A stretch of 64,000 nucleotides of DNA from Trichosphaerium sp. ATCC 40318 (Eukaryota; Protista; Tubulinea). This document shows positions 27,592-29,508 of the stretch, in pieces. The translations under genes were made by a program, and so were the position numbers. Position 1 is the first letter of the stretch; each line of letters opens with the position of its first letter. A model generated the notes under the pieces. The model did no database searches, had not been told where the DNA came from, and saw only the letters and a program-made list of their open reading frames with translations. The stretch is taken from assembly GCA_038496445.1 (NCBI GenBank), contig JALMLS010000149.1, positions 1 through 64,000 on the forward strand. The letters run 5' to 3'.

Positions 27592-29508
27592 TTATCTCAT
27601 TTGATACTCAAGAGAAGTGTCAAGGCTTCCATACTTGCCAACCCATTTGACATCTAGGATGATATCCCAATCTCTTTTGTTTGTTGGGTTTTGTTTGAAT
27701 GAGACTGTACCCTCGATTATCTCCTCTGTAGACAGAAAAGTTAGAATTTGTTTTTTCAATAATATTCAGTCGTAGTTGGTACGAACCTTGACAGACTTGC
27801 ATGACATCACGGAGGTAGAAAATGGTTTGTTTCCAGTGAGTGTATTCAGCTTGAGGACCTAATTTATCAAAAAGGTTAATACCAGTTAACAGTGGCGTTT
27901 GTTTTTACTAACCAGTTGAGAAAGAGATTGGCTTATGACATTTCGAGAACTCTACATCAAAAGACATTACAAGAGCGTGTAGGTAATCCTTTCGCCGTGT
28001 TTTTAGTCTGAATTTGAGTGGAGGGAATGCTTTAATACTCTCAAGTGTAGCAGTATTCAAGTCAATATCCTAGAGGTTCGTAAGCCTCCGAGTAGTCGTA
28101 AGACAAATTATTCAAATAATTTTGAACTTGATGTTTCAAAGTGGATTGAAGGACAGCTGTTTACATCAGCGTAACCTCCACCTACCTTGATTTTTTTTAC
28201 TCTTCGAGACGTTGTTGCAAGCGTTTACTCATATGGGATCAGATGTACGCTCGTACACAATCAACAGCAAACGCCTGAACTATCTCGCAAAACAAGAAGG
28301 AAAAGAAAAATAGAAATATTCGAATTGTTCTTTTGTTGTACCAATATCTTGTGGCTGCTTGTTACAACTGCTTCAACATCAACTGTATCAACAAGTGGTT
28401 CTCTGCATGCGAGTTTTTTGATCGGACTGAAATCAAAACCGTAGACGTTGTCCCAGACTAACAACAAAAAGTTATTAAAAAAAATCAAATTCTTTTGATG
28501 AAAACAATTGGCGTACAATTGATTTTCTCGTGTTTATATTGACCGTCTTCTACACCACAAATATATACGCTTGCGATATCTGGTAGAAGTGTACCTCCTT
28601 TCACCTGATAGAATAAGAATTTTTTTCAATTTTTTTTTCAAACAAGACAAAGTGCACGTCACCTTGAACGTCATACAATTTGAAATTTCAATTGAATAAA
28701 GAAAAAATAAAAACCAAAAAAAAGACTTACCAACCACTTATCGCGTGCAAACATTACTGAATCAAGCATGGACTCATACACTAGCATGTAACCCATCCAT
28801 TCGCTGATGATAACATCGACCTGAAAGGAATTGTGAGTAGTTTTGTTTAATTTTTTTTTTGAAGTTTGTAAACAAACGAACGTACTTTTTCAATGCCGTC
28901 AGGAAGCTCAATTTCTTCGATTTTGCCTTGTACCAACGTAATGACTAGATAAGAAGTAAGAAAACGGAATAAAATAAAAAAAACAGCTTTATGTTTTATC
29001 AGAGAGTTGTCACGACTCTGAAATGCGTTATTTTGATGTGATTATGCGTACCATCATCAAGTTGATTTACTTTAACAATCTCGCGTGCTTGTTCAATAAT
29101 AGCAGACATTTCGACCTAGTAGGCATGAAAAACGCGTAAATTAGCTTTTTCGTACGCCAATAACTTTTTTTGCTCCAGCTTGAGCTGCAAACATACTGAG
29201 AATGCCCGTGCCACATCCTAAGCGGTTTTGGCAAGTGTTACGCAAGTAGTTGTGTAATTACCGACATCAAGCACTACTTTATCCTTTATCAAGTGCTTGC
29301 AGCCAAAAATTGCGCGCTTGTACGTCATTGTGCGTACTTCGTCTTTTAGCATTTCCTACATTCTTTTAGCAAAATGGAAAAACAAAAGAACCAGTCTAGA
29401 ACGCACTTCGTGTATGCCAAAGTGCGCATAGCTGTTCCAGTAGTAATCAGCGCTGGTAAGCTTGGTTTGGTCTACGCCGCCATCTGTGTTTGCCTCAGGG
29501 TTAGCCAT
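27592..29508 (-). CDS. PRMT1: Protein arginine N-methyltransferase 1
   Basis: [71 protein letters not shown], ends YQMR*. Confidence 0.97.
28129..28288 (-). ncRNA. Intronic box H/ACA snoRNA, snR10/SNORA21-like
   Basis: Lies in the 272-nt PRMT1 intron 28070-28341: hairpin 1, H box AGAGUA (28203-28198), hairpin 2, ACA (28134-28132). The hairpin-2 pocket strands GGUG and CAAUCCA are complementary to LSU UGGAUUG-U-U-CACC. Confidence 0.85.

Follow-up and report, generated by a model that had tools for sequence, protein, structure and literature searches.

The eighth intron of a gene for a PRMT1-type arginine methyltransferase in Trichosphaerium sp. ATCC 40318 was predicted, from the letters of the window (the whole 64,000-nucleotide stretch of DNA that was analyzed), to contain a box H/ACA snoRNA directed against the A-loop of the large ribosomal subunit. 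The questions addressed here are whether such an RNA is encoded in this intron, which ribosomal nucleotide it would modify, and whether its residence in a PRMT1 gene carries any functional meaning. The gene, the intron, and the candidate RNA are located in the window as follows:

27592..29508, minus strand: PRMT1-type arginine methyltransferase gene, 11 exons, 1038 nt coding
28070..28341, minus strand: host intron 8, GT...AG, 272 nt, from the exon model
28129..28288, minus strand: candidate box H/ACA snoRNA with a two-hairpin fold, approximately 157-160 nt (unmapped ends)

The exons were defined from open reading frame pieces together with splice motifs, and each exon was checked in its own phase. 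All ten introns are of the GT-AG type, with lengths of 51, 44, 40, 107, 65, 126, 59, 272, 54, and 61 nt. As originally predicted, the RNA is found in the longest intron of the gene (272 nt, compared with 40-126 nt for the nine others); it begins 53 nt past the 5' splice site, and 59 nt remain to the 3' splice site. The two exons flanking intron 8 match Pfam PRMT_C at consecutive profile positions, and their best solved relatives in the PDB are PRMT1 and PRMT8. The SAM-binding motif GCGTG is found in an upstream exon. Most of the introns in this gene are 40-65 nt long (7 of 10; for example, 29116-29155), and a GTACG-type 5' splice site is favored. Since these introns are very short, a length of more than approximately 200 nt usefully marks introns of this genome that may contain a snoRNA. 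A word search with exon 9 of the PRMT1 gene for exon-sized open reading frames of its relatives gave no candidate.

The minimum free energy (MFE) fold of the minus strand adopts the two-hairpin layout at -52.2 kcal/mol, compared with a mean of -36.1 kcal/mol for dinucleotide shuffles. The corresponding z is -4.52, and none of the 200 dinucleotide shuffles is as good. The reverse complement of 28129-28288 gives a z of -0.04, on par with shuffles. Because G-U pairs on one strand yield exactly such an asymmetry, the structure is that of an RNA encoded on the minus strand. The elements of the folded RNA are listed below in the 5' to 3' direction.

28205..28287, minus strand: 5' hairpin, a long near-continuous helix without a convincing guide pocket (fold, covariation, and target scans)
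28198..28203, minus strand: H box AGAGUA (ANANNA) in the hinge, followed by an A-rich hinge
28136..28190, minus strand: 3' hairpin that holds the pseudouridylation pocket (fold and covariation)
28179..28184, minus strand: 5' pocket strand UAGGUG, in which GGUG pairs with LSU C3369-C3372
28142..28148, minus strand: 3' pocket strand CAAUCCA, which pairs with LSU U3360-G3366
28132..28134, minus strand: ACA box, with one spacer base before it, 3 nt before the proposed 3' end (from the sequence)

The elements named in the original prediction were all recovered on the minus strand at the positions given there. Hairpin 1 is formed by the pairings CGAGA/UCUCG and AGGCGUUUGCU/AGUAAACGCUU, and hairpin 2 is formed by UCAAGG/CUUUGA, GAGG/CCUU, and GCUG/CAGC. 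The distance from the upper stem to the ACA box is 14 nt, as predicted, with the box beginning at the 15th nucleotide from the top of the pocket. The RNA was compared with the defining features of the H/ACA class. The hairpin-hinge-hairpin-tail arrangement appears in both the MFE and the consensus folds, an ANANNA sequence is present in the hinge together with an ACA 3 nt from the (unmapped) 3' end, and a bipartite pocket surrounds an unpaired U-N, with the target U about 15 nt from the ACA box, within the 14-16 nt typical of the class.

The identification of a target requires the ribosomal RNA of the same organism. The genome searched was a 70-Mb assembly with a GC content of approximately 37%, and its rDNA was located via the target 13-mer and confirmed with Rfam. 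The two rRNA genes used in the target scans are the following:

L009:670-4663, minus strand: LSU rRNA (Rfam)
L009:5264-7911, minus strand: SSU rRNA (Rfam), 2648 nt, with a score that is low for its length

The sampled rDNA copies are 97-100% identical among themselves. The divergence of the SSU extends into the near-universal 530-loop region, where the sequence is GUGCCAGCACCCGCGGUAACACCCACUCC.

The pocket pairs with the host LSU rRNA through 7+4 Watson-Crick base pairs with no mismatches around U3367. Both U3367 and U3368 are left unpaired at the base of the upper stem, which is the canonical H/ACA geometry. The duplex on the 5' side of the guide consists of 4 base pairs only. The sequence UGGAUUGUUCACC is present once in the LSU rRNA, at 3360-3372, and U3365-G3366-U3367 fall within the conserved UUGUUC loop. 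Complementarity between the pocket and LSU helix 92, whose lack would have counted against the prediction, is thus found in the host. A snoGPS-like scan for bipartite targets in the LSU, SSU, and ITS, run as proposed with the original prediction, gives the U3367 site the highest score, 11, and the runner-up 7.5. A score of 11 anywhere in the rRNA scan was attained by 1 of 300 shuffled pockets.

The A-loop triad of yeast is composed of Um2921, Gm2922, and Psi2923, and Psi2923 is guided by snR10 (PMC5699541; PMC7277114). Human SNORA21 guides U4500 of the 28S rRNA, the equivalent A-loop uridine, which adjoins Gm4499 (PMC12288042). The host triad U3365-G3366-U3367 corresponds to yeast Um2921-Gm2922-Psi2923, and U3367 corresponds to human Psi4500. 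The prediction that the pocket targets the LSU A-loop site of snR10 and SNORA21 agrees with these pairings, and it is complementarity that points to a function like that of these two RNAs, in which an A-loop uridine is guided from the 3' hairpin.

Two further copies of the RNA were obtained in a DNA search of the genome, at C39:309110-309255 (82% identical) and C102:6520-6676 (77% identical). The flanks of the three copies are unalignable, which indicates that the RNA unit itself, and not a duplicated segment, is common to them. A covariance model was constructed from the three copies; its match in the window covers 28127-28289, and no members beyond the three were found over the 70 Mb. The conserved pocket and stems were also used as an exact pattern against metagenome contigs, with 0 matches. 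The conservation described below is that among paralogs within one genome.

The three-way alignment contains 50 consensus pairs, and 94.7% of the pair cells are standard. Compensatory changes are observed in nine stem pairs, compared with 0-2 in controls with the partners displaced by 1-3 columns, and none of 500 column shuffles is as good. The H boxes of the copies (AGAGUA, ACAGCA, and AUAGCA) vary only at the N positions, with the three A's fixed, and the ACA box is invariant. The pocket bases are invariant at 13 of 13 positions, compared with 89 of the 144 other columns (three copies; Fisher p 0.002). Of the three copies, that in the window folds best (z -4.5) and receives the top covariance-model score. 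The fold of the C39 copy has a z of -3.73. The C102 copy has retained the boxes and the guide, and its fold has a z of +0.25, no better than shuffles. At least one copy may therefore be decaying, and the C102 copy may be weakening in this way. Taken with the fold, the boxes, and the pocket, the pattern of substitution argues that the window RNA is very probably a genuine intron-encoded box H/ACA snoRNA, located in a PRMT1 intron and carrying an A-loop guide in its 3' hairpin.

The RNA was not recognized by existing family models. The whole window, scanned at the Rfam gathering thresholds, contains 0 matches, and a permissive scan of 27900-28500 against all 4227 Rfam models gave no H/ACA family at E<=10, the matches in this segment being sub-threshold C/D and unrelated ones. 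The SNORA21 model (RF00412) gave no match at E<=10 in the whole genome. The original prediction had proposed that the SNORA21 and snR10 models be used for verification; no Rfam family matches, SNORA21 included, and the RNA is therefore regarded as a functional equivalent of snR10/SNORA21 rather than as a detectable member of the family. The lack of a match to a family model is usual for H/ACA guides over such evolutionary distances. The RNA is accordingly assigned, from its sequence features, to the H/ACA class as a new member, and it is considered a putative functional equivalent, not a demonstrated homolog, of snR10/SNORA21.

The window RNA resembles snR10 in that it is predicted to target the nucleotide that snR10 targets, at the third position of the A-loop U-G-U triad, and in that the guide is located in the 3' hairpin. 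No sequence or covariance-model similarity between snR10 and the window RNA is detectable. Whereas snR10 is an independently transcribed gene product of approximately 245 nt, the window RNA is approximately 160 nt and intronic. The guide pocket of snR10 belongs to its 3' hairpin; its 5' hairpin has no pseudouridylation target (PMC2879522; PMC5699541). The window RNA shares with SNORA21 (ACA21, RF00412) an intronic H/ACA organization, a similar size (136 positions in the model), and an A-loop target, U4500. It differs from SNORA21, which has a second target at U4431, in that the 5' hairpin of the window RNA is without a significant target or an open pocket.

Several results bear on this 5' hairpin. 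Its strand differs in each copy (GCAACAACG, GCAGCCA-A, and GCAACUAGA), and the opposing strands covary (GUU/AAC versus GGCU/AGCC), which favors a closed helix over an open pocket. The scan of the LSU, SSU, and ITS for a hairpin-1 target gave LSU U3762 as the best site (5+4.5), a result equaled by 101 of 300 shuffles. With scores in the range of shuffles, strands that differ between copies, and covariation of the helix, a second guide of the SNORA21 type was not found in the 5' hairpin. It had also been proposed that the hairpin-1 strand GCAACAAC pairs with a conserved SSU sequence, GUUGUUGC. This proposal fails in the host, where the octamer is absent from both the SSU and the LSU. The match to GUUGUUGC was rejected, since the homologous SSU site reads GCUGUUGC[UG]UUAAAG, without 3' pairing. 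The GCUGUUGC site is found in the unusually divergent 530-loop region.

The apex of hairpin 1 is well conserved among the copies, with 26 of 36 columns invariant, compared with 8 of 23 at the apex of hairpin 2 (p 0.007). It includes a 12-nt stem-loop, GUACGAGCGUAC, that is invariant, together with a 7-nt loop, CCAUAUG, which is single-stranded and conserved among the copies as CCAUAUG/CUAUAUG. The 5' hairpin of snR10 contains a single-stranded 7-nt element, CCAUGAA, that is needed for 18S processing (PMC2879522). The CCAUGAA of snR10 and the CCAUAUG loop of the window RNA occupy comparable places, and the likeness is slight, at 4-5 nt only. When the conserved loops of hairpin 1 were compared with the rDNA unit, only scattered 7-8-mers were found, two of them approximately 1.8 kb upstream of 18S. 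These matches are not kept in the C39 copy and were judged to be chance. Most likely, the 5' hairpin does not act as a guide and has a structural or assembly role. By analogy with snR10, it might instead act in pre-rRNA processing or folding and so give the RNA a dual function, which we regard as unlikely. If true, the combination of A-loop guide and 18S-processing helper known from snR10 would predate the split of amoebae from fungi and animals. The stem-loop GUAC-GAGC-GUAC of hairpin 1 (28244-28255, minus strand) carries in its loop a CGAG that faintly resembles the CAB box UGAG. The CAB box is a feature of Cajal-body H/ACA RNAs.

The two paralogs are also found in introns. On C39, a Roc-COR-kinase (Roco) gene carries its copy within a GT-AG intron that measures approximately 250 nt. 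On C102, the host gene encodes a NARG2_C (ICE2-like) domain, and the copy lies downstream of a GTACGC 5' splice site. Both copies are sense-oriented with respect to their hosts. The C102 host is located as follows:

L013:1740-2729 (G000 C102), minus strand: NARG2_C host gene of the third copy

All three copies are thus sense-oriented in GT-AG introns, and those in the window and on C39 are similarly far from the 3' splice site. The NARG2_C domain is that of the ICE2 family, part of the little elongation complex and active in snRNA gene transcription in animals; the link of this host to snRNA is probably a coincidence. As with intron-encoded snoRNAs generally, one RNA is found per intron, in the sense orientation and in an enlarged intron, and its release would presumably occur by splicing and exonucleolytic trimming. 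The typical vertebrate snoRNA hosts are genes for translation or ribosome biogenesis, whereas the hosts found here are PRMT1, a Roco kinase, and a NARG2-like gene, one guide being distributed over three unrelated hosts.

Of the H/ACA machinery, the genome encodes Gar1 (C47), a Naf1-like protein (C7), and a dyskerin DKCLD domain (C67). Two genes with a Gar1 domain were located:

L018 (G000 C47:297623-297772): Gar1-domain gene with N- and C-terminal RGG repeats
L017 (G000 C7:112621-112791): Gar1-domain gene with an acidic and Q/P-rich tail

From its domain arrangement, the C47 gene looks like the true Gar1, and the C7 gene looks like the assembly factor Naf1.

These proteins are pertinent to the proposal that a modification enzyme and a guide RNA are co-expressed from one gene, in which case the snoRNA would be real and its placement in PRMT1 functional, coupling production of the enzyme to that of a snoRNP RNA. 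The GAR domains of Gar1 and fibrillarin are substrates of PRMT1. The Gar1 of this genome has RGG domains at both ends, and the window RNA lies in the sense orientation within the PRMT1 pre-mRNA, hence this copy is necessarily co-transcribed with the enzyme. The premise is sound: in yeast, Hmt1/PRMT1 methylates Gar1, and in human cells an association of Gar1 with PRMT1 is known (PMC10123114). However, the identical guide is present in the introns of the Roco kinase and NARG2/ICE2-like genes, so that PRMT1 is one of three unrelated hosts, and the co-transcription of this single copy gives no signal of selection. The idea of PRMT1-snoRNP coupling thereby loses most of its support; a functional placement is quite improbable, and the residence of the RNA in PRMT1 is most likely incidental. 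The existence of the paralogs also raises the alternative that the copy in the window is a snoRNA pseudogene, silent or decaying, and that another copy makes the working RNA. Families of snoRNAs commonly include unexpressed copies, the three copies here are 18-23% diverged, and the C102 copy is already without thermodynamic stability. The window copy, however, is the one with the best fold and the highest covariance-model score, its H/ACA boxes and pocket are intact, and we therefore consider it very unlikely that this is the copy that has fallen silent.

In the most skeptical reading, the locus is a dispersed repeat or a chance pair of hairpins without RNA function. The lack of an Rfam match and the restriction of the family to three copies in one genome would be compatible with such an origin. 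It is contradicted by the strand-specific folding and the compensatory changes, by a guide and boxes that are invariant amid a background of 77-82% identity, by the presence of all three copies in sense introns, and by a target that is exactly a known conserved pseudouridine site. A repeat or chance origin is thus extremely improbable, and the preferred reading is that of a genuine H/ACA guide RNA in an incidental host.

For such a guide, the following pathway is proposed from the biology of the family. The window RNA would be transcribed within the PRMT1 pre-mRNA and bound co-transcriptionally by dyskerin, Nop10, and Nhp2, together with Naf1 and then Gar1. Exonucleases would trim the RNA from the spliced intron. 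The pocket could then pair with 5'-UGGAUUG-3' of the LSU through CAAUCCA and with 5'-CACC-3' through GGUG, as the complementarity of these strands shows, and dyskerin would convert U3367, the third base of the U-G-U triad in the helix-92 A-loop, to pseudouridine. With two paralogs that carry an identical guide, this job would be done redundantly.

The analysis adds a well-supported candidate H/ACA guide for one of the most highly conserved pseudouridines of the ribosome in a little-studied amoeba-like lineage, in which, as far as we could find, H/ACA snoRNAs have barely been catalogued. It is an RNA of an ordinary kind and opens no new mechanism. Guides of this type are missed by Rfam models and are found by target-based reasoning. 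The three copies in unrelated introns provide a small, clean case for the spread of a snoRNA between host genes.

The A-loop 13-mer TGGATTGTTCACC is also present at five sites outside the rDNA (G000 C2:659265, C17:408139, C86:42872, C151:105906, and C177:127299). In 3 of the 3 sites inspected, the 13-mer is preceded by T. The chance expectation is approximately 1-2 non-rDNA occurrences, a control with the reversed pattern gave 1, and the five sites are possibly due to chance. These sites were considered as C/D antisense guides and rejected, with C/D boxes or Rfam matches nearby at 0 of the 3 inspected. The rDNA itself is found within approximately 1.5 kb or less of a contig end on G000 C6, C34, C75, C125, C166, C284, and C293, and the small contigs C469, C481, and C581 carry two inverted rDNA copies apiece. 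This placement and the inverted pairs suggest that the rDNA is subtelomeric, palindromic, or both.
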